Shown here one piece after another: positions 2,891 through 26,331 of a stretch of DNA of 64,000 bases. The notes under the pieces were generated by a model, which saw only the letters and a list, made by a program, of their open reading frames with translations, ran no database searches and had not been told where the DNA came from. The stretch lies in the IMG/VR virus record IMGVR_UViG_3300028840_001395, positions 1 through 64,000 of that record; one strand, written 5' to 3'. Position 1 is the first letter of the stretch. The number at the start of each line of letters is the position of its first letter. The position numbers and the translations under genes are program-made.

Positions 2891-3766
2891 CTACCGGGTG
2901 ATCGTGAGCCGGGTCAGACCACGGGGGTTGTAGGCCCCGATGCCCAGGTTCTCGAACACGCTGAAGCCGATGGTCCGCGCCTTCGGGTCGTCGGCGGAGA
3001 GCACGGTCAGCTCGGTGCGGACCGGAATCCGACCGAACATCTCGGGCTCGCAGCAGACGTAAACCGTCCCGACCGGAACCAGGCGGCTCGTCACGATCTG
3101 GGCTCCCCAGAGGGTCGCCATCAGGCCGGTCTTGAGCAGGGTCGCCTGGGTCTCGATGTCGAGGATGTCACGCCCGAACTTGCGGAGGTCGGCGTAGTCC
3201 CTCGCGTTCATGTACACGCGCGCGACCCGGAGGTCGTGGCGCTCGATGAGCGCGAAGGCGTCGGCCAGCACGGCACCGGACAGGGGAGCCACGACCGGGA
3301 TGTCGGGGTTCATCTGCGCCGGGAGGCTGTCGAAGCCCGCCGTGGCGATGCTGTCGAGGATGGCGAAGACGCGCTCGTCCTCGGCGGCCTGGATCTGGGC
3401 GCGAGCCAGATCCTGCGCCCGCTCGATGAGGTCGAAGCGACGCTCCTTGATCTGCGTCAGCGGGATCTCGGGGTTGCTGGCGACCTCGAACAGGGGGAAG
3501 ATCACGCGCCGGGGCTTGGTCACGGCGAGGATGTTCTCGCCCTCCTCGCCCACGATGTACGCGGTCACGTCCGGGTCCTTGTCGTAGATCGGCAGGGCAC
3601 CGTCCGGGAGCTGCTCCACCAGGAACGTCTTGCGTCCCACGGCGGCGTAGTCCCGACGAGTGCGGAGGGGCTGCGTCATCGACGCGGCGAGCTTCGCCCG
3701 ACCCTGCGGGGTCTTGACGTACTCACCGATGATGCGCTGCTTGACTGCGTTGCTCACGTTTGCCAT
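2891..3766 (-). CDS. Major capsid protein (HK97 fold)
   Basis: 291 aa, strongly biased codons; GRAKLAASM.QPLR..RDY..VGRK.FLV..LP.GALPIYDKD and terminal E.LGIG..NPRG typical of large-myophage MCPs; located after protease and scaffold, followed by terminator. Confidence 0.85.
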   Translation of the reverse strand: MANVSNAVKQRIIGEYVKTPQGRAKLAASMTQPLRTRRDYAAVGRKTFLVEQLPDGALPIYDKDPDVTAYIVGEEGENILAVTKPRRVIFPLFEVASNPEIPLTQIKERRFDLIERAQDLARAQIQAAEDERVFAILDSIATAGFDSLPAQMNPDIPVVAPLSGAVLADAFALIERHDLRVARVYMNARDYADLRKFGRDILDIETQATLLKTGLMATLWGAQIVTSRLVPVGTVYVCCEPEMFGRIPVRTELTVLSADDPKARTIGFSVFENLGIGAYNPRGLTRLTITR

Positions 3767-3781: not shown

Positions 3782-4474
3782 TCAGATGCGCTGGTCGTAG
3801 ACCAGTTCGGTCTGGACCGCATCCGGCGGCATCTTGAGGATGCCGATGACGGTGGACTGGTTGTCCGCCCCAGCCACGAAGGACTGCGCCGCGACGGCCT
3901 GCGAGTCGGTCGAGCTGATGGCGGGGCCTGCGATGACCTGCTCGGCGGGCATCAGGAAGCCGTTCCGGGACGAGATGAGCCGCATCCCCGTGGTGTACAC
4001 GAGCGCGGTTCCCGCGACCGGAGCGCCGCCGACGCCGTTGCCGATCATGGCCGTCTCGTAGAGCGCGTTGCCGTAGGTGCCCTGGGAGGACATGTACGGC
4101 CCCTTGCCCGACGCAACGCTCGGAAGGTTCTCGTAGGCGTGGCCATTGGCATCGTTGATGAAGCATCCGAGGACATCATACCCGATGGCCTGCGTCAGGT
4201 CCGCCGCGATGGCGGTCTGCACGGCATTCGAGCCCGGTCCTCCGATGAAGTTGCTCCCCGCGTCGGGCCGCGTGAACGCCACCGAGCCGGAGAGGACACC
4301 CGTCAGAGAGGTGTCAACCCGAGTCGAGACGTTGGTGGCGACCGCCGGGGGGTTGGTCTGGGTGAACGCATCGTCCGTCAGGACACCCACGGTGTTCCGC
4401 ACGCCAGCGTGCAGAAGCCGGAGCATCGAGGAACTCTCCGTCCAACCACCCGAAGCCTGTCCAAGCAGTGGCAT
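3782..4474 (-). CDS. Putative capsid decoration/cement protein
   Basis: Gly/Ala/Thr-rich 230 aa immediately upstream of MCP; C-terminal VIGILKMPP strand pattern. Confidence 0.6.
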   Translation of the reverse strand: MPLLGQASGGWTESSSMLRLLHAGVRNTVGVLTDDAFTQTNPPAVATNVSTRVDTSLTGVLSGSVAFTRPDAGSNFIGGPGSNAVQTAIAADLTQAIGYDVLGCFINDANGHAYENLPSVASGKGPYMSSQGTYGNALYETAMIGNGVGGAPVAGTALVYTTGMRLISSRNGFLMPAEQVIAGPAISSTDSQAVAAQSFVAGADNQSTVIGILKMPPDAVQTELVYDQRI

Positions 4475-4703: not shown

Positions 4704-6335
4704 CTACTCGGCGGAGCCCTTGACGCCGAAGACGCTGCTCACGTCCGGCTCGGAGTCCCAGAGCTGCGACAGCTCGTTGACCTCGTTGCCCCCGGCGGGG
4801 GCGGGCTGGACGTGCCCGACCTTGGCGACGCCCTTGGACGCCTTCTTGGGCTGCGGGCGCTGGGTGGCCTTCTTCTTGCCGCCCTCCTTCTCGTCCTTGT
4901 CCTTGGCCTCTTCCTCGTCCTCTTCCTGGATGGTCTCGGCGGCCTCTTCCTCGGCCTCCTCCTCATCCTCCTTCTTCTCTTCCTCGTCCTCGGACTTCTT
5001 GGACGCGACGCGCTCGATGTCGCCGCCGAAGATGTCCATCAGGAGCGAGTCGTCCTCGGTGATGACCGAGTCCTCGGTGGCCAGGCCCATCGGGTCGCCC
5101 TGCATCGAGAACATGTCGGCCTCGACGCTGGACTCCTTGTCGGAGTCCTCATCGGCCTCCTCGTCCTGGTCGTCGTCGCCGTTGTCGTCGCCGTTGTCGT
5201 CGTCCTCGTCATCCTCGGACTTCTTCTTGGCGGCCTCCTTGTCGGAGCTGTCGTCGTCCTCGTCATCCTCGGACTTCTTGGCGGACATGATCTCCATGCC
5301 CTCCTCGATCATCTCCTCCATGCCCTCGACGCCATCGTCCTCGTCCATCATCTCGGCCAGCATGGCGGCCTCGTCCGGATCGAGGTCGGTGTAGAGGTCA
5401 TCGACCATCACGTCCTGGGCGTAGAAGGAAGCGACCACCTCATCGCGGGCGATGATGCCGTCACCGTCGGTGTCGAGGCTGGCGAACACGGCCTTGCTTC
5501 CGCGCCACTCGTCCTGGCTGACGAAGCCATCGTTGTCCGTGTCGAACTGGTCGAACATCACGGCGATGGGGTTGTCCGGGCTGGCGGTGTGCTCGTCCTT
5601 CGCGGTCGCGGCACCCTCGGCACGCTCCTGCTCCTCGGTCTGGGGCTTGGGAGCGAGGGTGTCACCCTTGGGGTCGTTCTGGTCGGCGTTCTTGAGACCC
5701 TTCACCTCGGCGGTGAGGGCTTCGAGCTTCGCCATCACGGACTCGGCGGAGTACTTGGGGCCGCAGGCCATCTCGACGTCCTCCTCGACCTCGACCTCCT
5801 CGTCGTCCTCGGCCAGAAGCGCATCGACCATCTCGTCCTCGACCATGACCTCATCGTCCAGCATCAGGTCATCCTGGGCGAGGAAGCCGCCACCGAGGCG
5901 CTCCAGGGTCTTGTTGAGCTGCTCGTCGGGCATGTCCATGTAGTCGAGGGCCTGGTCCTCGACCATCTCGGTCGAAGCCTCCTTGCCCAGCGTGTGGCGG
6001 GCGAGGCGGATGCACTTGTCGGCCTTCTTGACGACCTGGGCGCGGAGGCTCTTGGCCGACTTCGGCAGGCGCGGCTGACGCTTGTGCGCCGGGTGATCCT
6101 GATCCTCGACATCGTAGCCAGGGTCTGCCGGAGGGTTGCCGTCCGGATAGGGCGGCGGATGGACATCCTCGGCCCACGAGGACGTGTCACCGTTCTCGTA
6201 CTGGCTGGCCTCGGGGTCCTCCTGGGTGTGCGCCGGGTGGCCCTGATCCTCTGTCCCGTAGCCAGGGGTTGCGGGCGGAGCAGACGCCTTGCGATCTGTC
6301 GCCTGCCGCCTCGTCATGCGGTTACGCTTGCTCAT
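4704..6335 (-). CDS. Acidic scaffold-like head protein with EF-hand pair
   Basis: Between protease and capsid genes; very D/E-rich; DTDNDGFVSQDE and DTDGDGIIARDE canonical EF loops. Confidence 0.65.
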   Translation of the reverse strand: MSKRNRMTRRQATDRKASAPPATPGYGTEDQGHPAHTQEDPEASQYENGDTSSWAEDVHPPPYPDGNPPADPGYDVEDQDHPAHKRQPRLPKSAKSLRAQVVKKADKCIRLARHTLGKEASTEMVEDQALDYMDMPDEQLNKTLERLGGGFLAQDDLMLDDEVMVEDEMVDALLAEDDEEVEVEEDVEMACGPKYSAESVMAKLEALTAEVKGLKNADQNDPKGDTLAPKPQTEEQERAEGAATAKDEHTASPDNPIAVMFDQFDTDNDGFVSQDEWRGSKAVFASLDTDGDGIIARDEVVASFYAQDVMVDDLYTDLDPDEAAMLAEMMDEDDGVEGMEEMIEEGMEIMSAKKSEDDEDDDSSDKEAAKKKSEDDEDDDNGDDNGDDDQDEEADEDSDKESSVEADMFSMQGDPMGLATEDSVITEDDSLLMDIFGGDIERVASKKSEDEEEKKEDEEEAEEEAAETIQEEDEEEAKDKDEKEGGKKKATQRPQPKKASKGVAKVGHVQPAPAGGNEVNELSQLWDSEPDVSSVFGVKGSAE

Positions 6336-7950
6336 GGTCTCCTCCTTGAGCTTCCCTTGACCCTCCCGAGGCCCTTCCCCTGGAGAGCAACTTGCTTAGA
6401 CGAAGAATAGTCTTGGATTCAGAAAGCGACGGCTCACGACCCATCGCGGTCGCACAGGCGCTCCTGAAATCCTCGACGGTGCGGTACTTGGTGTGGCGGC
6501 CAACTTCGAGGGCCACCCTGTAGATCGGAACGGGCACCTGGATGCCCGCACGAGCGTTGAACGAAGCCACGGCCTCCAGAAGCTCCACATCAGACCTCGC
6601 GGTCTTGGCCAGAGCATCCAGGCCAGCCAGGTAAGCCCGGCGGATTCTGGTGTTGGCCTCCTTGACCACGTTGTCATTGGGGGCCATCGAGGAATCTTCC
6701 AGGGCTTCGTCCACCGTGTCCTGGCGGAGCTTGTCCTTGATACGGGTCTTCACCCGGTCGAGAACGAACTGCTCCAGCTCCTGCTCGACATCTTCGAGCG
6801 GGGCCTTCGGTTCCTCCGCCTCGTCACCACCCTCATCTTCACCACCCTCGTCCTCGTCCATCCAGCCCGAGAGGAAGCCGTTGGCCTGGATCGGGTCGGT
6901 GATGGTGAACTTCTGACGGGCGGGGGTCTCGAACGTGGTTGAGATGATATCGGCACCCTTGGATGCCTGGCTGGCAAGCTGGGCGTCGCTCTGGGCCACT
7001 CGATCAGGAATGACAGCATCCGAGAATCGAGTGGGGACGACGCCTTCGGCCAGGTTGGCAGCCTTGAGCTGAGCGTCCGGCGACCACTCGGGCGGCGGAC
7101 TGGCCAGAACCTTGGCTGCCCGGCTGGTGATCTCCGGCGTCGGCTCCAAGATGTTTCGCATGACCGCGCCCGTGAAGGCCGGGACACCGACCCAGGAACC
7201 CTCCACGAACATCACGCCGCCCGTGGGGTCGAGATCCTGGTGCCCACACAGCTCCGCGATGAGGTGGCGTCCGCCCTGCTCATCGAAGAAGGTGTTGCCC
7301 TTCATATACTTGATATGAGGGCACATCTCGGTTTCGTCGGCTGCCCAGTGACCACACTTGGTGCAGATGGTGCCATCGACGGTGCAGCCCATTGACAGGG
7401 TGCCCATCTTGCCGTTCTCGATGGCCTTGATCAGCTCGGTGTGCTTGCGGTCGGTGGCGATGAGGATATCCACGTAGATCGAGTCCCCGATGTCGCGTGC
7501 GACGGCATCGATGATGCGACCCTTGGACAGCTCCTCGACCTGGACGTGCTCCACGAAGTTGTGGGCACCCACGAACGTCGGGTACGCCTTGGCCAGAACA
7601 TCACGGTTCCAGGCGTCCTTGTTGTTGTTGATGTACTTCTGGGTGCCCGGCGTGATGCGGAAATCCGGGTAGCGCAGATCCACCTTGAACCCATCCACGA
7701 CCTGGGAGCCCCTCTTGGTTCCCGGCGGAGTCACCGAGTCCACGGAGGCGATGATGGTGGCGTGGGTCAGGAGGAAGTCCTTGGGGCTGAAGGGCTTGGA
7801 GAAGAACTCGGAAGCCCGCTCGATGAGGTTGTCCTTCAACCCCTCTGCGGCGATCTTGGTGCCCTTCCCGGCGACCCGGATGTTCGCCCACTGGGTCTTG
7901 CTCACCGAAGGGTGAACCAGATGGGCGTCAGCGGTCTTGGGCATCGCCAT
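6322..7950 (-). CDS. Prohead maturation protease (HK97/assemblin-like) with Zn-binding insert
   Basis: NFVEH, GRIIDA, LSMGC, CTKCG..CPH, FVEGSWVGVPAF motifs; ATG at 7950 overlaps upstream stop. Confidence 0.8.
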   Translation of the reverse strand: MAMPKTADAHLVHPSVSKTQWANIRVAGKGTKIAAEGLKDNLIERASEFFSKPFSPKDFLLTHATIIASVDSVTPPGTKRGSQVVDGFKVDLRYPDFRITPGTQKYINNNKDAWNRDVLAKAYPTFVGAHNFVEHVQVEELSKGRIIDAVARDIGDSIYVDILIATDRKHTELIKAIENGKMGTLSMGCTVDGTICTKCGHWAADETEMCPHIKYMKGNTFFDEQGGRHLIAELCGHQDLDPTGGVMFVEGSWVGVPAFTGAVMRNILEPTPEITSRAAKVLASPPPEWSPDAQLKAANLAEGVVPTRFSDAVIPDRVAQSDAQLASQASKGADIISTTFETPARQKFTITDPIQANGFLSGWMDEDEGGEDEGGDEAEEPKAPLEDVEQELEQFVLDRVKTRIKDKLRQDTVDEALEDSSMAPNDNVVKEANTRIRRAYLAGLDALAKTARSDVELLEAVASFNARAGIQVPVPIYRVALEVGRHTKYRTVEDFRSACATAMGREPSLSESKTILRLSKLLSRGRASGGSREAQGGDHEQA

Positions 7951-8549
7951 CAGAGCGCCTCCAGCAGATCGGGGTCGGGCTGGAACTCCACGTAGGACGG
8001 ATCTCCCAGAATGTCCTCCCGCTTGATGAGGAACAGGCAGTTCCCGCATCCCAGCAGGGGGACACTCTGTCCGCTGCGCCGCTTGTAGATGGCCTTCCTC
8101 AGTGCCTCCTGCTTGCACTTGGGGCACAGGTAGCTGCCGGAGTCCAACTCCCCCTGCGTCGCCTTGTACTGCCGGTCGGCAGAAGCCCAGTAGATGGCCT
8201 TCTTGACGAAGGCTCGGGCCACCCGCTCACGGGTGTTGTGGTCAGACGAAGTGTGGGGGAGCTTGTCGGGGCCACCAGGGACATCCACCGTACCTGCTCC
8301 ACCGGGGATGTTGTCGTCCCCGACCTCGGGGGGCTGGTAGTCCTTGGACTCATACCGCTGGAGATCCTCGACAGCCATACGGGCGGAACCTGTGGAGAAC
8401 TCCACATCCACCATGCCGATTGCAGGCCAGACGGCCTGCACTCTCCCGCTCTGGGCCGCGTGCTCCAGGATGGGATACACGATGTCCCCGACCTGGAACT
8501 CCTTGGCCCGGCGCTGGTAATCGACGTATGCCTGCTTGGTCTTCGGCAC
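7950..8549 (-). CDS. Hypothetical virion protein, SH3-like N-terminus plus C4 zinc ribbon
   Basis: FQVGDIV..GRVQAVW; CPKC...CGNC; carries RERVARAFVKKA motif. Confidence 0.7.
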   Translation of the reverse strand: MPKTKQAYVDYQRRAKEFQVGDIVYPILEHAAQSGRVQAVWPAIGMVDVEFSTGSARMAVEDLQRYESKDYQPPEVGDDNIPGGAGTVDVPGGPDKLPHTSSDHNTRERVARAFVKKAIYWASADRQYKATQGELDSGSYLCPKCKQEALRKAIYKRRSGQSVPLLGCGNCLFLIKREDILGDPSYVEFQPDPDLLEAL

Positions 8550-8567
8550 GAGTATCTCCGAAGGCTG

Positions 8568-9269
8568 CTACGCGGTCAGGACGTAGCCGTGGGAGGCCTT
8601 CTTCTCCTTGGCCTCCTCTTCCTTCTCTTCCTGCATGGACTTGGCGGCCTCCTCCTCGGAGTCGTCGGCGGCCTTCTTCTTGCCGCCTTCCTTCTCGTCG
8701 CCGTCGTCCTTGTCCTTGGCCTCTTCCTTCTTCTTCTCGATGTTCTTCAGGAACTCGGGAGGAAGATCCTTCTTGGCCTGGCGAACGACGGTCGCGGCGA
8801 GGTTGAGCGCCTTCTCGACCTGGGCTGCGGCCTCCTTGGGGAGGTCACCCTCACCGATGGCGGCAGCGAGGCCACCGAGGGCAGCCTGGACGCCGGGGCG
8901 CGGGGCCTGGGGATCGGTCGTGATGCGGTCGGGGCCGATCTCGCCGCCCTGCTGCTTCTCGCGCAGCTCGCGGTTCTCCTGCTGCGAGAACTCGCCCTTC
9001 ATGTAGGCCTCATCCGGCTCGTCCTCCAAGGGACCGGCCTTCTCACGCCCGATGTCGTCGGGGTCGAAGCCCTGCTCCTTGACGACATCATCGCCGGTCA
9101 GTGCGACCTTCTCCAGATGATCGGAGAGCATGTCACACCGCAGCGAGAAATCGTGAGCGATCCGCTTCTCGACCCCGAGGGTCTGGAAGTCCACCTCGAA
9201 CAGGTTGGCGAGCCGATCCAGGTCCGCTGTCACGGCCTGTGCGCCCTTCTTGGTCAGCTTCTGGGTCAT
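8568..9269 (-). CDS. Hypothetical head-associated protein with charged C-terminal tail
   Basis: AGGAGG RBS before ATG 9269 (MTQKLTKK); late motif upstream; tail shared with the scaffold-like protein. Confidence 0.75.
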   Translation of the reverse strand: MTQKLTKKGAQAVTADLDRLANLFEVDFQTLGVEKRIAHDFSLRCDMLSDHLEKVALTGDDVVKEQGFDPDDIGREKAGPLEDEPDEAYMKGEFSQQENRELREKQQGGEIGPDRITTDPQAPRPGVQAALGGLAAAIGEGDLPKEAAAQVEKALNLAATVVRQAKKDLPPEFLKNIEKKKEEAKDKDDGDEKEGGKKKAADDSEEEAAKSMQEEKEEEAKEKKASHGYVLTA

Positions 9270-12200
9270 CGTCTGGTTCCTCCTCCGAGTTCCATCCGTG
9301 GAAGCTCTGCTTGGGCACACACTTGCCCTTCGCTTATAAGGTTCCACGTATAGAAAGAAGATTGAAAAACTTTGGGCGAAGATGCGAAACTTTGAGCCTC
9401 TTTGCCCTGCGACTTGTACTTCTTGTCGAGATTCCCGATGTCCTGTTCCTCGACCGTATCTCGAATTTGTGCCCCCGTCAGAGAGTCCGGAGCAGGTTCA
9501 CCTATGATCTCACGGGCAATATCCTGGGCAATCTCGACCTGCTGGACACGAGCCTTGTTCGAGACTTCGTTGCACTTATTGATCTTTTCCGGGTCACCCT
9601 CGGCATCTGCCAGGCACTTCATCAGCTCCTTCTGGATCTGGGCGAACCGCTTATCGTTCCGCAGCGCCCCCTGGGCCGACTTGACCTTTTCGTCAACCTC
9701 ATCCTGGTCGTCGGTGCCATTCTCCCCCTTCCGGGCCGTCTCGGTCAGGAAAGCGTGGATCGTGGTCATCCCGTCCAAGTGGAGGTCTTTCAGCATATCG
9801 GTCAGAACCTTGGCGGACTGCTTGTCCTCGTCCTCATCCGAGGAAGCCTTCTCCTTGATCACCTTGATCATGTCCTTGTAGGGGCCGTTTTCACCCCCTA
9901 CCAAGGAGTACAGCTCATCGTCGGACACCTCTGACATCACCCCCTGTACAAGTTCCCGGCCAGCCGGGCTGTGGAACTCATCCGTGGACATCCCGACGAG
10001 CTTCATCGCCTCGCCCTTCTTGTGAAGGGCCTTGACCAGGGCCTTCATCTCATCGGCGGGTTCCTCCCGGAGGGGGGATATCTTCTCGTCGTTGACCAGG
10101 GCGGCCATCGCCAGGCCATTGGCGATGTTCTGTAGCTCCGCGAACTTGTTCTCATCATCCGTATCTTCGAGCAGCTTCTCCATCTGGGCGATGGCAGCCC
10201 CTCGAAGTTCGGGGGTCATCTTGGAGTACTCCTGGAACGCCTGCTCGGTACGCTGGCGGAGAGCATCCGCGTCCTTGGGCTGGTCGTTGACCTTGGTGCC
10301 TCCAACCAGGGTGGGGTTGGAAACAACCTTCCTGGCCAGCGTCTTGGCAGCGAGGGCCTTGGCGCTGTCCCGGAGGTTCATCCCCTGGCCGAAAGTGTCC
10401 TTCTTCAGCGCCTTGGTGGCCTCTGCGATGGTCTTGTCGGAGAGAGCGTCCCCAGAGAACACGCCCGTCTTGAGCTTCTCAAGCTCATCGGCGTAGGCCA
10501 TGAGGATGGCCCGCTTGTCCTCGTCGCTCTCGACACCCTTGAGTTCCGCCGCGAAGTTGGTATCCCCGACCTGGCGGGCCACGTTGTCGATCTTGTCGAT
10601 GTCCGCCTGGAGCTTCTTCTTCTCGGCCTCGGCCTTCCGCTGCTCAGCCTCTTCCTCAAGGCGCTGCGCCTTCTGGGCGAGGGTTTCTTCCTCAACCTCG
10701 GTCTTCTCATCGGGTGTCAGAGGCTCTCCCTTGGCCTTCTCGGCATCAGAGAGAGCCTTGGACTTCTCAGCCAGGCTGAGACTGACTTCCTCATCCCCCT
10801 TGCCCTTTTCGGCATTCCTCTCATCTGCATCGTCAGGATCGAGCTTGCCCGCAGCCATCGCAGCGGCATTCGCCTCATTCTTGGCGTGGCTATACTCGCC
10901 ATCGGGGAGTCGGAGCCCCCACTCGCCGTTCTCCTTCTGCCAGTAGTCGCCGGGCTTCTTATCCTTGCTGTCCTCGGGAACCTTCCCGGCCAGCCGGTCG
11001 AGCCAGCGCATGGCAACCCGCTTGTAGTTGAGGGAGAGATCCTCGTCTGTGTCCGCCGTGCCGCCCTCGGTGTCCTCATCCCCCATGTCCACCCGCTTCT
11101 TCTTCAGATCCTTGCGGGGTGGCTTGAACTTCGGAGCGGGCTTGACGAGATCCTCGACAGCCTCATCTTCCTTCTCGGCGTGGGTCTTGGTGGCGCGGCG
11201 CGTCATGTAGGTGTGGCCCGGACCCTTGCCCGTCTCCACGAAGCCTCGCTGCTTGAGCATCCTCACGGCATGGGGATTCACGGCATCGAGGCAGAACTTG
11301 ATGTCTGGGAACGGATCGGTCAGGTCATCGTAGTTGCTGATGGCGATGTCCATCAGCTTGCTGCCCAACGCCTTGCGCTGCCAGGCGGGGTCCACCACGA
11401 TGTCGAACTCGTAGCACTCCCGGTCACCAGAATCCGACGAGTCGAACAGAGCTGCCACAAGCTGTCCGTCAACCTCGTATCCGGCTACCCAGTCCTGGTG
11501 AGACAGGACACGGATGCCTACCCGCTGTGCGAGATCCCACGGGTCGGAGCCACGAGGGATGCGCCAGACGAGCTTCGGGGATCCTGCGGTGAGGATGTCC
11601 TCGAACTCCTGGCGGTAGCGGTCGATGATCTCGATGACCTCTGCGAAGCCACCCCCTGCAGCCTGCTTGTCCAGCTTGGTCTTGACCTGGCCCGTCGCCA
11701 GGAAGGTGTCTTCGAGGCCCGGAACGAGATACTGGCTCTTGAGGGTCGAAGGCTCGTGGCCGACCTCCTTGGCGGTCTCTTCCAGAGCCTTCTTGAACTC
11801 CTCCTTGAACTTCTTCTCGCGTTCCTTCTTGTCGTCCGGGGCTGGGTTGCCCTTGTTCCGGATGGCCTTGAGCTTGTTCTGCATCACCCGGTTGGCGTGC
11901 AGCCCCCGGATGTCCTTGGCCGTGATATCCATCGGCTTGAGGTAGTCGTTGACCGTGGTGGAATCGACCTTCACGTCGTCCACCTCGAACACCGGATCGG
12001 TGCCGGACTTGTCCTTGACGGCCTCCCGCAAGACCCGGACGATATCCGGGTCACGGGTCTCCTTCTTCTGGCTCACCCCGGACTTGCCGACGTACTTGAT
12101 CGTGGCCTTGTCCTTACCCACCGTGACGTGCTTGGCCTGCCAGCCGGTGACACCGAAGTGACCTTCCTTGGCCGAGTCGGGGTTGCCCACGCGCTCGTAG

Positions 12201-15200
12201 GTGTCATTGATGAGACCCACAGCCAACGCCGTGAGACGGGTCTTGAGGTCGTCAGAGGACAGATCCTTCTTGACCTTCTTCTGGAGGTCACCGAGCTTCC
12301 CACGGAGCTTCTCGACCCGCTTGGCCTTCTCCCGGTTCCGATGCTGAACCTGGCCTTCCGAATACTCGTAGACTGTGGTGGTGCCCTTGCCGTCCGCCTT
12401 GGGCACTTCCTTCTTCTTCTGGTACTTGGCGGCTACTCGCTCCGCCGGAGTCGCGTTCGGGTGAAGCTCCCGCCACCGCTCGTAGGGAGTCACATTGTCG
12501 CAGTCCGTGGACTCCTCACCGTAGGGGGACTCGATCTCGATGTCCCCGACGCACTCATCGGTCGTCTCCAGAACCTCGGCCCAGACGTACTCGGGCTCGC
12601 CGGTCATCGGCCCGAACACGGCACGCTCACCTTCCTCGAAGGCTTCGCCGTCAGCGGCCATGCGGGAGGCGAAGCGGTCAGCCACGTTCTCGACCAGCGG
12701 GGCGTCGCTGATGAGGAGAGGCACCGAATCCTCGGGGATGACCCAAGAGCCGATCTCCTTGCCATCCTCATCATCGAGTTTCAACTCGGTGTACTTGACG
12801 TTAGCTGCAGCCCGCTTCTTGCGAGGTCTCTTACGGGGTTTCTTGCGGGGCTTCGGCTTGGGCTTGTCCTCGTCGCCTCCGCTTCCCCAGATGCGCTCGA
12901 AGTCCTCCAGATGCTCTTCGGGCAGCTTCTTCATCACGGCCAGCGCAGAGGCATCGCAGAAGTGCTCCTGGGGATGGGTCGATGAGTAGGGCGTCGGGTA
13001 GTTCTTGTTCGCCCGTGCTGACCGGAGCAGCACCTTGCGGATCTCATGAATGGGGATGGGGAGCACCCTGTCCTGGTTCGGAACCTGGAACCAGTAGTTT
13101 TGGTCGTCCATCTTCTCCACGAAGAACGGCCCCTTGATGCGGCGCATCCTGATGGGAAGCTCATCACCCACACCCGGCATCTCGATCTCGGGGGTCTTCT
13201 GACCCACCCGGATGTGGTGCATCTCCCACTCACGCTGGGCCTTCTTGTCCCCGAACTTCTGCCACCACCGATGCGACAATTCGTGGATGATGTTGTGAAC
13301 CACATCCATGTTGAACCGGGCGAAAGGCCGGATATACATGTCGTCCCGCTTGCCGTTGTACCAGGCCATTGTCTTGGCTTGCTGTAGCTGCGGGACGATG
13401 AACACGTCGCCGTAGAGGGTCTTCTTCAGAGTCGCCGGAACCTTGGCTGCCCGGATGAGCTTCGCGGCCTTGTTGATCGTCTTCTTGACGTTCTCCAGCT
13501 TCTTGCCCGTCAACCCCATCGTGTTGTGAACCATGAACGGGCCGAGCTTGAACTTCTCCTCCGTCCCCTCCACCTTGTCGCGCCAGTGCTGGGTCGCGTT
13601 GAGGAAGTCGATGTGCCGCTGGGTCTTCTCCATCCACGGCCCGAACTTGATCGGCATCCGGCGGGCGGACATGAAGTGCCGGGCCGCCAATTCCAGACCC
13701 TTGTGCTTCTTCGCTGGGACGTGCTTCAGGTCGAGCACGCCTTGGGCCACATTCCGGCCATGAACGACGAGCCAACCCCAGGGATTCTTGAGTTGCCTCT
13801 TGATATGGCGATTCTGGAGGGCCTCGGGAGGCACCTGGCGAAGAACGTCTTTCAGGGCCTTCCAGAGTCCCATCAACTCCTGATAGGAATTGGCCAGGTC
13901 TGCGGGGGTTGTGAGCGTCGCCTGCTTCTGGTATCGGAGGGCTACCCGCTCGGCAGATGCCTGCTTCTCCTCGGGCCACGGCTCGGGAGCCGGGCGGATC
14001 TTGAACAGCTTGAGTTCCTTGTTCTGCTTCCGGCCCTTGGGGTAGGGCTCGACCGTGACCACCACATCGCCTTTCGAGTCGGTCTTGAAGCCCTTGATCT
14101 TGCCCTTCTTGTTCTTGTACTTGCCGTAGAGAACCGAGTCTCCGATGTTCAGCTTGAATGTGGCTGCGATCTTCCCACCCTGCACCTCCGAGGGCACCTG
14201 GTAGTAGACGATATCGTCCTCATCGCGCACGTTCAGCCGGTGCGGGGTCTTCTTGAGCATCGAGACCCCCTTCTCGAAGGGAATCATCTTGGCGTTCTTC
14301 AGCACCACATCCCTGTTCCAGACCACCTCCTCGGGATACCCATACTTGGGCACCGTGGGAGTCTGGAACGTGATGGCAACGAGCTTCTCGCCCATCTCGG
14401 GCTTGATGTGCGTGGTCTGCACTCTGGGAACGAAGTGCCCCCAGCGGGACGACACGGCGGTCACGTTGTCCGTCCCGAACTTCTTGTATGGGGGCCTCAT
14501 CTTGAGCTTGCCGTCAGCCAGAATCAGGCGTGCCCGGCGGTTGGTCGTGAAGTGGACGAACGCATCGTCCTTCACGTCCATCAGGTAGTGGGTGTGCTGG
14601 TCTTGAATCGGCGTTCCCAGCCACACCATCCACTCGGGATGAGCCTCGGGAGCCCCTCGGAGGGCCATCTTCGTTCGCCCCCACTCACTGGCATCATCGA
14701 ACATCACAATGAACTCAGGCTGACCGCGAAGTGCCCCCGTGCGCCCCCCGCCCAGCGCCTGACGCACCTTCTTCTCCAGACGACGTGGATTGGCAGCCAG
14801 CACAGGGTCAATCAGGAGAGCCTGGCGGGCGGCCTCGGTGATCTTCTGGAACTCCTTGCCCGTCAGTCCGAACTCCGAAGCGAGTGCCCTCATGTCCATG
14901 ACCTTGCCCGGCTGGGCCAGGACAGCAACGAAGGCATCGGACTCATCGGCGCTCATCTGGACGGTGATCTCGCGGACACGCTGCCGCTGCCGGGCATCGA
15001 GGAACCCCAAACGCTTCCCGGTGGGCATACCCAAGTCCATCAGGTCGAACAAGGTCGCCAGGTCAGCCTTCTTCTCGGCCCAGTTGCCCAGTGCCGAGGC
15101 GAAGCCCTTGTCCTTGCGGGCGATGTCCTTGACCACATCGAGGAGACCCAGGCGCTTCATCTCCAGCAGGGCCTTCTTGCCCACTCCGCCCTCATAGAAC

Positions 15201-16693
15201 GTGTCGATGATCATGTTCGACAGGTGGGACGGCGGGACGTTCTGGAGCTTCTGCCTGTTCCGCTTGATGGAGGCTTCCACGTCCGGGGCGATCTTCAGGC
15301 CATACTTGAGCAAGAACTTGATGGCCCTCACCATCCGGCTCGGGTCGTCCGCGAACACCTTGTCAGGGTTCTGGGGGCACCGGGCAACGCCCTCCTGCAA
15401 GTCCCGCAGGCCACACCCCGTCAGGTCGATGATCTCGGCCTTGTCCGGCCCCTTGGCCAGGTCGAGCAGCCTCCACATCAGCGTGTTGAACGTGAACTCC
15501 CGACGAATCACGTCCTCCTCGATGGTCGAGGGCTCGACCATGTGGGGCTTGTAGCCCTTCCCGGCCTGACCGCCGTAGCTCTCCTTGCGGGCGTTGGCGA
15601 TCTCGATGACCTCACCGTCGAGGTTGGCCCCTCCGACCTCCCAGTCGCCCTTGATGGTCAGGATGGCCACGCCGTAGTTGTTCGTGGTCAGATTGGTCGG
15701 GACAGGAATCGCCCTCTGGAGCTTCTTGGCGAACCACTCCGAATCACGACCAGCCGCGATGGAGTCAATCACCACGTCGATGTCCTTGATAGGCTGGTTG
15801 ATCACGAAGTTGCGGACGGCTCCACCCACGACGTAGGTGTCCTTGGCGACCCCGAGCTTCCGGGCCACGTCCGAGAGGAACTTCATCAGCGCCCGGCTGG
15901 CCTGGTCGGTCATCTCGGACAGGTGTGTCGAAGCCACTCGATTGGCAGTGGCACTGCCAAAAGGAATGGTCTGGAGCTTCGGGAGCCCCCAGACCTCGAT
16001 GTTATCGAACTCCCAGTCGCCTTGGGGCACATCGCCCTTGTAGACCGCCGTGAGGCCGTCCAGGTAGGCCAGAGTGACGTGGGGGCGGTAGATGAGCGGG
16101 AACTTGTCGTCCACCCGAAGGCCTGCGTCAATGAGCTTGTCGCGGAGCTTCCAGCGAATCCCGGCCATGTCGTGACTGTAGCGGATGCCCATCAGGGCGA
16201 CCCTGCGGCCCTTGTCGGGATGGACGAAGTATTCGGGGCCTTGGAGATGGGCTCGAACGGGCTCCCGGATCTCCGCGAAAGCCTCCCGCGAAGCGTTGAG
16301 GAACGCTTCTTCCTGGTCTGCCGGGACGTTCCCGACGTAGAGGAATGTGGCGTGGGGCTTGGACTTGTCCTCGTCGCCCAGCGGGGGGAACTGGCCTGCA
16401 AGCTCCTTCGGGACAGGGATGAAGAATCCGACCCCGGTGCGGTCGCCGGTCTTCTTGCCGTCCTGGGAGTCGGCCTTCTTCTTCGGCTTTGCCGGATCCT
16501 CGCCGTACTTCTTGCCGACCTGGCCGCCCTCGACCTCGCGGTGCTTGACGATATCGCCCTCGTGCTCCTTGCTCCAGGACTTCCAGTGCTTGTCGCAGAA
16601 CCAGGCCCGGCCCCGGCCCTCGGCCCAGACACACTCATGGGTCGGGGGCTTGCTGCATTCCATGCACTTCGACATGGAATGGCGGCCAGCCAT
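9266..16693 (-). CDS. Giant polyvalent virion-associated protein: Zn finger, 2H phosphoesterase, CCA/poly(A) nucleotidyltransferase, ART-like, SH3-like, zincin, topoisomerase IB, GNAT, helical tail
   Basis: PHATF/PHVTL (2H); GGAVRN..KDID, RREFTFN, DDPSR (class II NTase); HFTT...I..G.L; HELSH..QEHF; YERVGN, GKSG, KDIRG, GH...QY (TopIB); VVDPAWQRKALGSKL (GNAT). Start chosen at ATG 16693 with GGAG. Confidence 0.85.
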   Translation of the reverse strand: MAGRHSMSKCMECSKPPTHECVWAEGRGRAWFCDKHWKSWSKEHEGDIVKHREVEGGQVGKKYGEDPAKPKKKADSQDGKKTGDRTGVGFFIPVPKELAGQFPPLGDEDKSKPHATFLYVGNVPADQEEAFLNASREAFAEIREPVRAHLQGPEYFVHPDKGRRVALMGIRYSHDMAGIRWKLRDKLIDAGLRVDDKFPLIYRPHVTLAYLDGLTAVYKGDVPQGDWEFDNIEVWGLPKLQTIPFGSATANRVASTHLSEMTDQASRALMKFLSDVARKLGVAKDTYVVGGAVRNFVINQPIKDIDVVIDSIAAGRDSEWFAKKLQRAIPVPTNLTTNNYGVAILTIKGDWEVGGANLDGEVIEIANARKESYGGQAGKGYKPHMVEPSTIEEDVIRREFTFNTLMWRLLDLAKGPDKAEIIDLTGCGLRDLQEGVARCPQNPDKVFADDPSRMVRAIKFLLKYGLKIAPDVEASIKRNRQKLQNVPPSHLSNMIIDTFYEGGVGKKALLEMKRLGLLDVVKDIARKDKGFASALGNWAEKKADLATLFDLMDLGMPTGKRLGFLDARQRQRVREITVQMSADESDAFVAVLAQPGKVMDMRALASEFGLTGKEFQKITEAARQALLIDPVLAANPRRLEKKVRQALGGGRTGALRGQPEFIVMFDDASEWGRTKMALRGAPEAHPEWMVWLGTPIQDQHTHYLMDVKDDAFVHFTTNRRARLILADGKLKMRPPYKKFGTDNVTAVSSRWGHFVPRVQTTHIKPEMGEKLVAITFQTPTVPKYGYPEEVVWNRDVVLKNAKMIPFEKGVSMLKKTPHRLNVRDEDDIVYYQVPSEVQGGKIAATFKLNIGDSVLYGKYKNKKGKIKGFKTDSKGDVVVTVEPYPKGRKQNKELKLFKIRPAPEPWPEEKQASAERVALRYQKQATLTTPADLANSYQELMGLWKALKDVLRQVPPEALQNRHIKRQLKNPWGWLVVHGRNVAQGVLDLKHVPAKKHKGLELAARHFMSARRMPIKFGPWMEKTQRHIDFLNATQHWRDKVEGTEEKFKLGPFMVHNTMGLTGKKLENVKKTINKAAKLIRAAKVPATLKKTLYGDVFIVPQLQQAKTMAWYNGKRDDMYIRPFARFNMDVVHNIIHELSHRWWQKFGDKKAQREWEMHHIRVGQKTPEIEMPGVGDELPIRMRRIKGPFFVEKMDDQNYWFQVPNQDRVLPIPIHEIRKVLLRSARANKNYPTPYSSTHPQEHFCDASALAVMKKLPEEHLEDFERIWGSGGDEDKPKPKPRKKPRKRPRKKRAAANVKYTELKLDDEDGKEIGSWVIPEDSVPLLISDAPLVENVADRFASRMAADGEAFEEGERAVFGPMTGEPEYVWAEVLETTDECVGDIEIESPYGEESTDCDNVTPYERWRELHPNATPAERVAAKYQKKKEVPKADGKGTTTVYEYSEGQVQHRNREKAKRVEKLRGKLGDLQKKVKKDLSSDDLKTRLTALAVGLINDTYERVGNPDSAKEGHFGVTGWQAKHVTVGKDKATIKYVGKSGVSQKKETRDPDIVRVLREAVKDKSGTDPVFEVDDVKVDSTTVNDYLKPMDITAKDIRGLHANRVMQNKLKAIRNKGNPAPDDKKEREKKFKEEFKKALEETAKEVGHEPSTLKSQYLVPGLEDTFLATGQVKTKLDKQAAGGGFAEVIEIIDRYRQEFEDILTAGSPKLVWRIPRGSDPWDLAQRVGIRVLSHQDWVAGYEVDGQLVAALFDSSDSGDRECYEFDIVVDPAWQRKALGSKLMDIAISNYDDLTDPFPDIKFCLDAVNPHAVRMLKQRGFVETGKGPGHTYMTRRATKTHAEKEDEAVEDLVKPAPKFKPPRKDLKKKRVDMGDEDTEGGTADTDEDLSLNYKRVAMRWLDRLAGKVPEDSKDKKPGDYWQKENGEWGLRLPDGEYSHAKNEANAAAMAAGKLDPDDADERNAEKGKGDEEVSLSLAEKSKALSDAEKAKGEPLTPDEKTEVEEETLAQKAQRLEEEAEQRKAEAEKKKLQADIDKIDNVARQVGDTNFAAELKGVESDEDKRAILMAYADELEKLKTGVFSGDALSDKTIAEATKALKKDTFGQGMNLRDSAKALAAKTLARKVVSNPTLVGGTKVNDQPKDADALRQRTEQAFQEYSKMTPELRGAAIAQMEKLLEDTDDENKFAELQNIANGLAMAALVNDEKISPLREEPADEMKALVKALHKKGEAMKLVGMSTDEFHSPAGRELVQGVMSEVSDDELYSLVGGENGPYKDMIKVIKEKASSDEDEDKQSAKVLTDMLKDLHLDGMTTIHAFLTETARKGENGTDDQDEVDEKVKSAQGALRNDKRFAQIQKELMKCLADAEGDPEKINKCNEVSNKARVQQVEIAQDIAREIIGEPAPDSLTGAQIRDTVEEQDIGNLDKKYKSQGKEAQSFASSPKVFQSSFYTWNLISEGQVCAQAELPRMELGGGTRR
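9350..9365 (-). promoter_or_regulatory. Putative late promoter TCAAT-N7-CTAT
   Basis: Minus strand tcaatcttctttctat, ~80 bp upstream of the 9269 start, inside the 3' end of the giant ORF. Confidence 0.6.
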
Positions 16694-17697: not shown

Positions 17698-17713
17698 ATA
17701 GGACTAGAAACGA
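17698..17713 (-). promoter_or_regulatory. Putative late promoter variant (TCGTT-N7-CTAT)
   Basis: Same spacing as the other copies; overlaps portal stop codon. Confidence 0.45.
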
Positions 17714-19401
17714 CCGCCCTCTTCCTCCGGCTTCTCGTACTTGAGCCCGAGGTTCTCGGCAATCTTCTCCGCAGCGTCCGAATTCTCGGCCAGAGCGTCG
17801 CCCGTCCGGCTGTAGATGCCACGGAGAGCCTCGTTGAACGTCGCGTCCTTGAGGGTGAACAGGTCGCGCTTGAGCTTCTCGTCCACCGTGTCCGGGTCGA
17901 GGTTGAGCAGGTCGAGGATGGTGTCGATGTCCAGCGACCCCTTCTGGTAGAGGTTGAACAGGGCATCGAACGTATCGCTGTTGTCCCGCAGAGCCAGGCG
18001 AGTGAACGAGAGCCGGGGGACGATGACTTCCAGATTCCCGTCCTCGTCCTCCTCCACGAAGCCCATTCGGCGGCACATCGGCTTGAAGAAGCCGTCCTCC
18101 ACCAGGTCTTGGAACAGCTCCCGCATGAGCATGTAGCGGGTGTTGATGACTTCCAGGTGAATCCGGTCGCCCGAGTAGGACGACTCGCCCGACAGAAGGC
18201 TCTCGGTCACGCCCAGGCCCGCATACATCTGCCGGTCGGTGAAGTCCCAGACCCACGACCAGTCGGGAAGCCGCTGGTCTGCTCCCATCTCTTCCCAGTT
18301 GACCTGGAAGTTGGTGATGATGGAGTAATCCGGGTCTTGCAGAGCGAGATCGACCTGCTCCCGAAGCTCCTCGGTCTGTTCCTCGTTCATGTCCTCGGCG
18401 TAGACGAGCCGGTAGGGCGTCATGTGCCGGGAAGCGATGGACGTGAGGCTCTGACGCACCTTGTCACGGAATACCAGCGTCCTCATGCACCGCTGGAGGA
18501 TGCTCTGACCCCGATCCTCGTAGTCCGCCCGCTTCCGCTGGAGGCAGTAGAGGTAGGAGCCCGCGTCAGGGTCCATGTTCAGCGGGATGTTCTCCCCCGC
18601 CTTGATGGACGCCACAACGCCCTCGGGCATCGAGTTGACGATACGGATGGCCTGAGCATCACCCTGCTCGGCCTTCTCGATGATGTTCTTCGTCTTGCTG
18701 TCGGGGATGAGTTCGACCAGCTTCTCATCGGTGAACGGGAAGCTCTCCATGTGGATCTGCTCGGGAGGGAGCACACGGATGGCCGTCCAGCCCTTGTAGT
18801 TCTTCTTCAGCCAGGCAACCTCGCGCTCATCGGCATCCTCGTAGACCTGCCACTTCTCGACGGTCTCGCCCTCGGCGGTGATCTCTCGGATGCACTCCTC
18901 ACGGATCTCGCGGGGCATCTCCGGCGACGTGTCCTCGCAGAAGATGTTGGCCTCGCCCAGCAGGTTGTAGTCGTGGCTGATGCTGATGAGCCGGTGCAGC
19001 AACTTGATGTTCTTCGCCCACCGCTCACAGAACCGCAGGGCCTTCTTCCCTAGCTCCTTGTCCTTGCACTTGGGCGGGGCCAGCCGGAGCTTCGACAGCG
19101 GCAACTCAGTGTGAAGATCGACCGCCTGACCGACGAAGGGCTCGTACTTGTAGAAGAATCGGTAGAAGTTCCGCTGCTCATCGATGCTCTGGGGAAGCTC
19201 AAGGAAGTCCGTGGACAGCTCGGGCGAATACCAGTTGCCGCCCATTCCCAAGACGGTCTGGCCACCGGCACCCCAGACCGAAGCGTTCTTCATCTTCATG
19301 GCGGAGGTGACAATCTTGCTGGGCTTGCCAACCGTGACGTTGCCCCTGACGGGCTTCATCTCTGCCACCTTGATGGTGTGCTCTGGGTCGTTCTTCGTCA
19401 T
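17704..19401 (-). CDS. Portal protein
   Basis: 565 aa downstream of TerL; RFFY..EPFV.QAVD.HTELPLS, RGQSILQR, GLGV...LLSGE.SYS patterns typical of large-phage portals. Confidence 0.8.
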   Translation of the reverse strand: MTKNDPEHTIKVAEMKPVRGNVTVGKPSKIVTSAMKMKNASVWGAGGQTVLGMGGNWYSPELSTDFLELPQSIDEQRNFYRFFYKYEPFVGQAVDLHTELPLSKLRLAPPKCKDKELGKKALRFCERWAKNIKLLHRLISISHDYNLLGEANIFCEDTSPEMPREIREECIREITAEGETVEKWQVYEDADEREVAWLKKNYKGWTAIRVLPPEQIHMESFPFTDEKLVELIPDSKTKNIIEKAEQGDAQAIRIVNSMPEGVVASIKAGENIPLNMDPDAGSYLYCLQRKRADYEDRGQSILQRCMRTLVFRDKVRQSLTSIASRHMTPYRLVYAEDMNEEQTEELREQVDLALQDPDYSIITNFQVNWEEMGADQRLPDWSWVWDFTDRQMYAGLGVTESLLSGESSYSGDRIHLEVINTRYMLMRELFQDLVEDGFFKPMCRRMGFVEEDEDGNLEVIVPRLSFTRLALRDNSDTFDALFNLYQKGSLDIDTILDLLNLDPDTVDEKLKRDLFTLKDATFNEALRGIYSRTGDALAENSDAAEKIAENLGLKYEKPEEEGGRF

Positions 19402-19736: not shown

Positions 19737-19990
19737 TTCGGCCCCCACTTGTGCTTCTTGGTCATCTGGCCCTTCTCGTAGGCGGCCTTGAGCACCTTCT
19801 TGAGCTTCCGGATATCGGTGGGGGAGCCCTTGAAAACCCGCTCCCACGACCCTCCGGCTCGCACAAACACGTCGGAGATCAAGCTGAACTCCTCCGGCAC
19901 GTATTCTACCTTACCCTCCAAGGTCGAAACTGTCAGCTTCTTGATGAACCGATGGTCGGCCCGAACAGGGCTACGGGGGTCAATGTCCAT
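19733..19990 (-). CDS. Hypothetical protein
   Basis: Translationally coupled to TerL. Confidence 0.65.
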   Translation of the reverse strand: MDIDPRSPVRADHRFIKKLTVSTLEGKVEYVPEEFSLISDVFVRAGGSWERVFKGSPTDIRKLKKVLKAAYEKGQMTKKHKWGPK

Positions 19991-26296: not shown

Positions 26297-26331
26297 TCGT
26301 GCCTCCACACTTCTCCTACAGACTCCGACCT

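Follow-up and report, generated by a model that had tools for sequence, protein, structure and literature searches.

A giant modular protein encoded after the portal gene of a huge phage, a candidate virion-packaged polyvalent effector

A stretch of 64,000 nucleotides of IMG/VR record IMGVR_UViG_3300028840_001395 (positions 1 to 64,000 of the record, hereafter the window) carries, on the minus strand and within its head-gene module, a single gene whose product, a giant protein of 278 kDa, is made up of eight modules or more, of which four are supported by profiles. On balance, we read this giant protein as a polyvalent effector of a huge phage that would be packaged in the virion. A note made earlier from the sequence alone (the original prediction) had described a protein of about 2,475 amino acids (aa), encoded by one open reading frame (ORF) in the head module, and had listed its domains. 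The uninterrupted 2,475-codon gene is indeed present at 9266-16693 and all the domains named are found, in the order given, with a support that varies from one domain to the other. The gene and the predicted features of its product, followed from the N- to the C-terminus, are:

9266-16693 (minus): giant gene, 2,475 aa, TGA stop at 9266-9268, 278 kDa
16484-16672 (minus), aa 8-70: Zn-binding module, C-x2-4-C...C...C-x2-H, then a conserved IVKxRxVxxGxVGxKYGExP
15944-16468 (minus), aa 76-250: 2H phosphoesterase (LigT/ThpR-like), HATF and HVTL motifs
14744-15943 (minus), aa 251-650: class II tRNA nucleotidyltransferase/poly(A) polymerase-type module, GGAVRN...DID and RREFTFN
14189-14626 (minus), aa 690-835: ART-like 'FVHFTT'/HFT domain, from stand-alone homologues, AlphaFold2 (AF2) and Foldseek
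13949-14161 (minus), aa 845-915: SH3-like (Tudor/KOW/chromo-type) beta-barrel, AF2 pLDDT >90 here
12839-13816 (minus), aa 960-1285: helical and zincin-like metallopeptidase module, HELSH at 13271-13285
12467-12838 (minus), aa 1286-1409: charged linker, poorly conserved, basic PRKRPRKKR then an acidic stretch
11654-12466 (minus), aa 1410-1680: type IB topoisomerase (poxvirus/bacterial type), PF01028 at 3.2e-24
11204-11596 (minus), aa 1700-1830: GNAT acetyltransferase, PF00583 at 24.6 bits for a cut-off of 20.7
10994-11203 (minus), aa 1831-1900: T1 element, ATKTxAEKEDE...PKxKPPRxDLKKKR...DLSLNYKRVAxRW
9374-10993 (minus), aa 1901-2440: acidic C-terminal tail, rich in helix-forming residues

On the minus strand, the ORF list and the translation give one frame running from 16747 to 9266, of 2,493 codons from its first ATG and with zero internal stops. 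The most plausible start of the giant gene is ATG 16693, which has a GGAG 5-8 nt upstream and stands 1 nt past the TAG of the preceding 323-aa ORF; the gene caller picked ATG 16675 instead, which gives 2,469 aa. All residue numbers are counted here from ATG 16693. Gene calls on 9 contigs of ~436-438 kb, which come from separate assemblies at JGI and ENA, give an identical giant protein, and a 435.8-kb IMG/VR contig carries the same giant-gene stretch with 100% identity. Furthermore, the relatives described below together align over almost the entire giant protein. A misassembly or hidden stops, which the original prediction had itself raised against its single frame, are thus unlikely, because the identical ORF is recovered in independent assemblies. 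The giant ORF is real, and its source is a huge environmental phage of roughly 436 kb.

Judged from profiles and motifs, the assignments of the topoisomerase IB, class II nucleotidyltransferase and GNAT domains are firm. The topoisomerase IB domain scores 86 bits against PF01028 (cut-off 23.7) and matches, in the PDB, the Deinococcus enzyme 2f4q (1.6e-8) and the poxvirus enzyme 2h7f (1.3e-6); when it is aligned to these two structures, the pentad is complete, with R (ERVGN), K (VGKSG), R (KDIRG), H (VGHEP) and Y (KSQY) on the catalytic positions. The nucleotidyltransferase module matches PF01743 (1.5e-15; 58 bits, cut-off 23), phrog_2244 (2.8e-26) and the PAP, A-adding and CCA-adding enzymes of the PDB (6e-15 to 4e-9). 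As far as sequence can tell, its family is certain; CCA-adding, A-adding and poly(A) activities are indistinguishable at this level, because the scores are far below all NCBIfam equivalog cut-offs, none of which is reached (at best 79 bits vs 306 for PcnB, and 74 vs 439 for CCA).

The 2H and Zn-binding assignments are made at the level of motifs. The two H-x-T/S motifs of the putative 2H phosphoesterase, HATF and HVTL, are spaced by 91 residues; this domain matches PF13563 with E=6.6e-6 and 26.7 bits, 0.3 bit below the cut-off of 27.0 (relatives reach down to 9e-7), and TIGR02258 (RNA 2',3'-cyclic phosphodiesterase) with E=1.4e-4 and 21.8 bits vs a cut-off of 65.7. The Cys/His pattern of the Zn-binding module is kept in 5 relatives, and this module has no Pfam match. 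As for the charged linker, its net charge is -16 and few relatives cover it.

The ART-like, barrel and zincin-like domains are read from structure models. For aa 683-1290, the AF2 model relies on a checked alignment of 28 sequences; its mean pLDDT is 82.5 and it contains three folded units. A first alignment of a segment, made with full-length relatives (A1), had its ends stretched over unrelated domains and was discarded. The SH3/Tudor-like barrel is firm in the model: Foldseek matches it to Tudor and chromo barrels with TM 0.64-0.77 and a probability of 1.0, and to small phage barrels with TM up to 0.84. In the zincin-like module, the HExxH helix is preceded by three strands and a conserved EEHFCE helix lies ~95 aa downstream. 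HELGHRxWxK and EEHFCE are near-invariant, and HELGH invariant, in 10 relatives. The BFVD matches of the module are IrrE-like (probability 1.0, E 0.014), M34 (probability 0.99) and SprT-like (probability 0.95) proteins, over an E range of 0.014-0.05; no peptidase stands among its top 50 PDB matches in Foldseek, and it has neither a Pfam match nor a stand-alone homologue. The model thus gives moderate support to a zincin-like metallopeptidase. The zincin module is also matched, with 28% identity and 3e-29, by a 6.5-kb feature (6518-13045, 'similar to hypothetical protein') that directly follows the terminase-like gene of Virus Rctr197k (KX853510.1, L001; 197 kb, from a DAMO/anammox enrichment), and this feature is probably another large head-module cargo gene, from a different phage lineage.

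The HFT domain is autonomous, with 12 stand-alone homologues of 133-248 aa, and its H, S, QTTH and EE are invariant. In the three-domain Foldseek query the barrel dominated the results, and the HFT domain was therefore modelled alone (pLDDT 83.5, pTM 0.82). Its matches of credible probability belong mostly to the ART superfamily (DarT, Tpt1/KptA, TreTu, the heat-labile enterotoxin LT, tankyrase and CC0527). The invariant H32 (FVHFT strand), S66 (AVS strand) and E106-E107 (EEVxW strand) stand on consecutive strands of the model and could, by analogy only, correspond to the H/R...S/Y...E catalytic signature of ARTs. The ART-like fold is weakly supported by the model, and the 'ART-like' label is reasonable but unproven, with protein, DNA or an RNA 2'-phosphate as possible substrates. 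The domain has no sequence match in Pfam or the PDB, a PDB profile search with the ART-like alignment gave noise, and no Pfam model matches the ART-like and zincin modules, be it in the giant protein or in the aligned relatives. The Foldseek check proposed with the original prediction, segment by segment, thus leaves the barrel firm and the zincin moderately supported, but the ART-like domain without a significant match. A stand-alone ART-like homologue is found near the head genes of a T4-like phage (L027), outside any slot of the kind described below.

A search with the whole-length protein retrieves at least 116 giant relatives of 1.4-4.2 thousand aa, on contigs of up to ~600 kb, and no relative covers more than 41% of the giant protein. 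The modules are found as follows among the 116 relatives, with counts that are biased to proteins sharing words with the query:

Topoisomerase IB: 109/116
T1: ~85/116
SH3 barrel: ~70/116
Tail: 50-68/116
Nucleotidyltransferase: 60/116
2H: 33/116
Zincin: 20/116
GNAT: ~17/116
ART-like: 12/116

These modules stand in many orders, positions and combinations from one relative to the other. Extra domains are present in other members, namely ART-PolyVal (PF18760), InPase (PF18823), NUDIX, RNA_ligase (PF09414) and HAD_SAK_1, and further PAP2, LigT, AIG2/GGACT, carbonic anhydrase and inteins. The combination of domains, which the original prediction did not recognise, is thus unmatched as an exact architecture, but it is one permutation of a large modular family. 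This family is apparently undescribed: literature searches on the family itself, on DUF5661, on topoisomerase IB in huge phages and on polyvalent proteins in huge phages found no description of it. Near-identical DNA is absent from the GenBank phages, and tblastn with the whole protein, the tail or the C-module (see below) against phages, INPHARED included, gives per-domain matches and one uncultured huge phage only.

The closest topoisomerase IB relatives in the species-genome collection (L028, L029, L030) lie on contigs of 22-205 kb, binned in two Actinomycetota metagenome-assembled genomes (MAGs), one of them named Lysinibacter, and in one unclassified MAG. These contigs are probably phage DNA. 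The bins, together with the 62% GC of the window, give a weak hint at an actinobacterial host.

The genes around the giant gene are all on the same strand and tightly packed. The head module of the window comprises:

19990-21864 (minus): terminase large subunit (TerL), head-module context
17704-19401 (minus): portal, phrog_16240 at 1.8e-28, 64% identity to the portal of the published 485-kb phage LR745208.1
16695-17666 (minus): 323-aa ORF directly upstream of the giant gene, its N-terminal half being a module fused inside other giants; motif RRVASKYIK
8568-9269 (minus): 233-aa ORF (C-module), whose start overlaps the giant-gene stop (ATGA)
7950-8549 (minus): 199-aa ORF, with a beta-rich N-terminal segment, a junction motif ERVARAFVK and a C-terminal pair of CxxC
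6322-7950 (minus): prohead protease-like protein, 542 aa, phrog_18299 head maturation protease at 2.8e-11
4704-6335 (minus): 543-aa EF-hand protein, between the protease and capsid genes, with a canonical EF-hand Ca-binding loop (E=2.6e-9)
3782-4474 (minus): 230-aa ORF, head-module context
2891-3766 (minus): major capsid protein, phrog_2522 at 3.7e-50

The giant gene had been placed between portal and protease. Its head-module position holds, but it is not the immediate neighbour of either gene, as the 323-aa ORF separates it from the portal gene, and the 233-aa and 199-aa ORFs from the protease gene. The 323-aa ORF matches the giants P0134, P0003, P0002 and P0058 in BLAST, at 3e-30 to 4e-18. 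Both the 323-aa and the 233-aa ORFs are modules that other phages have fused into giant proteins, and they belong to the same unit as the giant gene. The N-terminal segment of the 199-aa ORF looks SH3-like by eye, and a gene of this type, with its mid-protein motif, is kept just upstream of the protease gene in six related loci. The protease-like protein has zero matches in the PDB and Pfam, and a PHROGs search of the flanking small ORFs and of the C-module family gave nothing useful.

The same arrangement is found in relatives. All nine relatives' loci examined are in head modules, and a slot occupied by the giant gene or its equivalents directly follows the portal in the four of four loci that reach upstream, as well as in the window. 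Downstream of the slot, the relatives have a ~195-aa gene, a protease-like gene and then, where the locus extends far enough, the capsid gene, so that the order TerL, portal, slot, protease, major capsid protein is the same in the window and in the loci extending that far. What the slot contains is highly variable. A single giant gene occupies it in L020 and L021. In L022 and in the P0036 locus, the giant gene is followed by more genes, including a second very large topoisomerase IB protein (4,047 and 2,561 aa for P0036). The slot is divided into many genes in L024 and L026 and holds two tandem giants in L023, none of these three loci reaching the portal. Finally, the slot of LR745208.1 (485 kb) holds a 508-aa protein, made of an N-domain, topoisomerase IB and a terminal T1, and the C-module gene only. 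Slot content thus goes from 508 aa up to over 6,600 aa, either fused or divided among many genes. Within the head-gene operon, the slot is a hypervariable site with the portal gene on one side and the prohead protease, scaffold and capsid genes on the other, and its recurring core is topoisomerase IB and T1, often with an acidic tail, and the C-module, which is fused in many relatives.

Several features of the window and its relatives stand apart from the slot. The EF-hand match is also obtained with the syntenic genes of L020 and L021. Past the capsid gene by ~1.5-2 kb, close to where the window coordinates begin, an 81-aa ORF (1187-1432, minus) has a precomputed Pfam match to the Acb2/Tad1 hairpin family (anti-CBASS/anti-Thoeris nucleotide sponges) and adjoins a 127-aa AdoMet decarboxylase-like ORF (767-1150, minus). 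This phage clade often carries inteins and LAGLIDADG endonucleases: they are found in the ribonucleotide reductase of the window (55012-57855, minus), in the terminase, portal and protease genes of relatives (L021 18899-21706; L022 1462-4731 and 6714-9965), and within the nucleotidyltransferase module of several giant relatives, which is there interrupted by ~450 aa.

The end of the giant protein is made of elements that do not look enzymatic. T1 corresponds, with 50-60% identity, to the C-terminal end of small topoisomerase IB, GNAT, 2H and HAD (HAD_SAK) proteins. From aa 1831 to 2440, the putative helical tail has a net charge of -34, and helix formers make up 55% of its residues. An exhaustive HMMER search with T1 and the tail finds 275 representative clusters at E<=1e-3, and the tail match ends near the C-terminus of most proteins where it is found; the tail has no match in Pfam or the PDB. 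The last ~25 residues of the giant protein (window 9266-9350) match no relative.

In the C-module, the N-terminal 110 aa and the GYxLxA end are conserved, and the middle is acidic. In more than 45 family proteins its N-terminal part has a match close to the C-terminal end, and where the tail is mapped too, this match lies downstream of the tail match. As the homologous regions of the giant ORF and the 233-aa ORF are collinear, and spaced as in the fused relatives, a frameshift fusing the two was considered; it is disfavoured by the strong ribosome-binding site that the 233-aa ORF has of its own (GGAGGAGGA), besides the ATGA overlap, and by closer relatives that also keep the C-module separate. 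The boundary is read as a natural gene split, with translational coupling here, and the searches treated the two pieces separately. A role of the C-module as scaffolding protein was attractive from its composition and its conserved C-terminal tip, but no match supports it: a PDB profile search gives noise only, and PHROGs gives no support.

A short motif punctuates the giant protein. Its logo is [AS][AVS]xR[VLI]A[AS][RK][YWF][LQ], or [AS][AVS]xRVA[AS]R[YWF] in short form (hereafter RVAxRY), with the pattern of an amphipathic helix. Five copies are found along the chain, at module boundaries:

15914-15955 (minus): copy 1 (SATANRVASTHLSE), at the 2H/nucleotidyltransferase boundary
13922-13963 (minus): copy 2 (QASAERVALRYQKQ), after the SH3 barrel, a low-confidence helix in AF2
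12650-12691 (minus): copy 3 (ENVADRFASRMAAD), degenerate, after the zincin
12413-12454 (minus): copy 4 (ATPAERVAAKYQKK), immediately before topoisomerase IB
10994-11035 (minus): copy 5 (SLNYKRVAMRWLDR), at the end of T1

In the family, R[VILF][AV]xx[YWF] occurs 254 times vs 38 expected from shuffles, a 6.7-fold enrichment. The mapped enzymatic modules make up 27% of residues, and yet all 222 copies of the stricter form R[VIL]Axx[YWF] fall outside them (p ~1e-30). When the slot is split, the separate genes have the motif at their very N- or C-terminal end, and it is found mid-way in every homologue of the 199-aa ORF. A DNA-level recombination hotspot was rejected, as the five copies use different codons; selection therefore acts on the peptide. 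The motif was scored by a regular expression and a position-specific score matrix, since a hidden Markov model made from five seeds turned out overfitted.

Besides the 323-aa ORF, the motif also occurs in four or five further unannotated ORFs of the window. Four of them lie outside the head module and have no Pfam or PHROG match:

25664-26308 (minus): 214-aa ORF, RRVAHRYLQ at the extreme C-terminus
26352-27206 (minus): 284-aa ORF, QQIADRYQ near the N-terminus
31044-31367 (minus): 107-aa ORF, KRVARRWVG
61453-63585 (minus): 710-aa ORF, FRVAARWIL

These four ORFs may encode further tagged cargo proteins. Around aa 180 of the capsid protein, a conserved, motif-like LRVAR[VI][FY]MN is present, also in L021, L024 and L025, and it may reflect either coincidence or a mimicry between motif and capsid.

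All these results, taken together, lead us to favour, if by a modest preference, the giant protein being a virion-packaged polyvalent effector, because its domain content and its conserved post-portal position fit the polyvalent-protein concept (Iyer et al., 2017), and because the conserved non-enzymatic T1, tail and C-module and the behaviour of the cassettes point the same way. The polyvalent frame adopted by the original prediction is reinforced by the relatives, whose loci are in head modules with the slot after the portal and some of which carry ART-PolyVal and InPase, Pfam families that were derived from polyvalent proteins. What we infer for the giant protein concerns its packaging, injection, substrates and processing, and the action ahead of phage transcription put forward in the original prediction is a proposal of the same kind. 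It would be made late, alongside the head proteins, would enter the procapsid via the tail and C-module and/or the repeated motif, and would be ejected with the DNA into the next cell. There, topoisomerase IB would take charge of the genome as it arrives. The 2H and nucleotidyltransferase domains could repair the tRNA 3' ends or cyclic-phosphate ends left by host defence nucleases, or else degrade signalling nucleotides, and targets of the host might be modified by the ART-like and GNAT domains. The zincin may split the chain into its parts. In the window phage, the core of the slot has been extended by two enzymes for the repair of RNA ends, namely a 2H cyclic phosphodiesterase with a nucleotidyltransferase of class II CCA/A-adding type, and by ART-like, Tudor/SH3-like barrel, zincin-like and GNAT cassettes. 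The presence of 2H and nucleotidyltransferase domains, with RNA ligase and HAD_SAK_1 in relatives, suggests the role in tRNA-end repair. The coding of early-useful enzymes in a late structural operon would make sense if these enzymes travel in the virion.

Several points weigh against a packaged effector of this kind. No MuF/gp7, portal-fusion or other known head-anchoring domain is detected in the giant protein, and MuF (PF04233) is found neither there nor in the 323-aa ORF, the 233-aa ORF or the tail, even at E<=1. T1, tail and C-module match nothing known, and known internal head proteins do not typically carry an acidic tail of 540 aa. Among the enzymatic domains, the nucleotidyltransferase is so far under all equivalog cut-offs that a tRNA substrate is only putative, the zincin rests on motifs and on matches at E ~0.01-0.05, and the ART-like domain has no significant structural match in Foldseek (best E 0.11, with DarT; TM 0.25-0.47). 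Finally, the collections searched hold no cultured relative and no virion proteome, and the matches in the species genomes are to MAG contigs only.

The RVAxRY motif is read, from its sequence and positions, as a tag or docking helix that each cassette would bring with it, a processing site being an alternative that we judge less likely. One tentative possibility is that the motif forms, with T1, the tail and the C-module, a modular and hitherto unknown cargo-loading system of one huge-phage clade. Any tagged cassette entering the post-portal slot, fused or unfused, may then be loaded in the HK97-type capsid and injected; topoisomerase IB may be the constant packaged passenger, and the motif, by analogy, may be the counterpart of encapsulin cargo-loading peptides or of T4 targeting sequences.

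The alternative that survives best is compatible with packaging and differs solely in the role given to the motif. The giant protein could possibly, although we rather doubt it, be a true polyprotein whose RVAxRY junctions are cut by the prohead protease or the embedded zincin, freeing the enzymes in the head or after ejection. The presence of the motif only between modules would be expected of cleavage sites, its distance of 3-18 residues from the N-terminus in some split genes recalls the cleaved targeting propeptide of T4 type, and autoprocessing by zincin-type peptidase domains has been proposed for polyvalent proteins (Iyer et al., 2017). However, the motif is predicted to be helical and amphipathic, not extended, it is also found within ~10 residues or less of C-termini, where cutting gains nothing, and the zincin is present in just 20 of the 116 relatives. 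Moreover, the portal, protease and EF-hand head proteins have no motif, bar the capsid-fold stretch and isolated weak matches in single relatives.

The giant protein could also be a head-internal factor, structural or devoted to DNA handling: a topoisomerase IB anchored by the tail and C-module would relieve torsion during the packing or ejection of a 0.4-0.5 Mb genome, or would organise DNA as a component of an inner body, the other enzymes being passengers. We consider this unlikely, even though topoisomerase IB and T1 form the near-universal core of the family (109/116 for topoisomerase IB), the minimal slot of LR745208.1 consists of N-domain, topoisomerase IB and T1 followed by the C-module, the family is found on very large contigs, and two parts have the look of a scaffold, namely the long acidic tail, rich in helix formers, and the C-module, whose middle is charged and whose C-terminal tip is conserved. 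This scaffold-like reading of the C-module is unsupported in the PDB and PHROGs, and the accessory cassettes are typical conflict and repair enzymes with a fast turnover, which points to host-directed roles. In addition, tailed phages with large genomes, such as T4 and phiKZ, are not known to package a topoisomerase.

Equally improbable in our view is a late multi-enzyme helper that would stay in the cytoplasm, unpackaged, for tRNA repair, DNA relaxation and acetylation, and whose gene would be in the head operon by chance. In its favour, no known capsid-targeting or portal-binding domain is found, stand-alone CCA-type enzymes are common cytoplasmic phage proteins, and the ART-like homologue of the T4-like phage stands alone outside the slot. 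Yet the head-module position is kept across fission and fusion states and in distant relatives, and T1, the tail, the C-module and a tag-like motif have no obvious use for a free enzyme. Lastly, that the giant ORF is an artefact, either a chimeric assembly or a long open frame that arose when decayed genes happened to be joined, is hardly conceivable: 62% GC DNA does yield many long spurious ORFs in other frames, but the same ORF is found in independent assemblies, relatives match it along nearly its full length and its catalytic motifs are undamaged.

The packaged effector that we favour is closest to the polyvalent proteins of phages and conjugative elements, which are predicted to be head-packaged and injected (Iyer, Burroughs, Anand, de Souza and Aravind, 2017; PMC5512222). 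The two share many unrelated effector or enzymatic domains per chain, a gene beside the portal/terminase head genes, and domains of the 2H and GNAT kinds and, as predicted here, of the ART and zincin-type peptidase kinds, to which the ART-PolyVal and InPase of the giant relatives can be added. They also differ in several respects. In that paper, 'CCA-adding' is absent and 'topoisomerase' is mentioned once; the nucleotidyltransferases are minimal Pol-beta enzymes, protein-modifying and from Firmicute mobile elements, whereas the module here is a full one of class II type; and 2H is never associated with RNA ligases, whereas it stands here with a nucleotidyltransferase and, in some relatives, also with RNA_ligase and HAD_SAK_1. 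The giant protein is, in addition, without MuF. T1, the tail, the C-module and the RVAxRY motif do not appear in the matched passages of this paper (the term 'linker' gave nothing) or of two follow-up papers. In the literature searched, the general concept is known, with no topoisomerase IB or class II nucleotidyltransferase in polyvalent proteins and no such motif.

Other known systems share single aspects with the giant protein. The type IB topoisomerase of vaccinia virus is packaged in the core and aids early transcription. It is of the same enzyme family, with the same pentad, and offers the idea of a particle-borne topoisomerase IB acting on an incoming genome; poxviruses belong to another virus realm, however, and here the enzyme is one cassette of a 278-kDa chain for which we infer packaging. 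MuF-fused polymorphic toxins of temperate phages and encapsulin cargo-loading peptides both rely on a conserved element that marks exchangeable cargo for an HK97-fold shell. Such a conserved element, marking exchangeable enzymatic cargo, is the likeness with the giant protein; the differences are that no MuF is detected here and that RVAxRY as a loading peptide is our hypothesis. The motif is unrelated in sequence to the targeting sequence of T4.

In the virion RNA polymerase of phage N4, a zincin-type domain is needed for encapsidation, and Alt and the internal proteins of phage T4 have a short terminal capsid-targeting sequence (both as summarised in PMC5512222). As would be the case for the giant protein, these large or enzymatic proteins travel inside the head and enter the cell along with the DNA; they have no sequence relationship to it, and the motif is internally repeated here. 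Finally, the RNA repair 'Swiss Army Knife' and the phage tRNA repair systems (Pnkp/Rnl of T4, CCA-adding enzymes of jumbo phages, PMC7824862) have in common with our family the 2H and CCA-type nucleotidyltransferase domains and, in relatives, HAD_SAK_1 and RNA ligase; phages use such repair enzymes against tRNA-cutting defences. These are free cytoplasmic proteins encoded among early or metabolic genes, whereas here they are cassettes of a protein encoded in the head module. In the literature searched, there is no description of packaged RNA repair or of a packaged type IB topoisomerase in tailed phages.

The motif, T1 and the C-module provide a testable handle on how very large phages choose their head cargo, and the motif system could give a natural tag for loading foreign proteins into capsids. 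The family has evolved by shuffling cassettes within one slot, whose content extends from 0.5 to over 6.6 thousand aa and is punctuated by a single short motif. If the giant protein is packaged, huge phages would bring into the cell, before any phage gene is expressed, a ready-made kit holding a topoisomerase for the incoming half-megabase genome, tRNA-end repair against anticodon and acceptor-end nucleases, and modifying enzymes.

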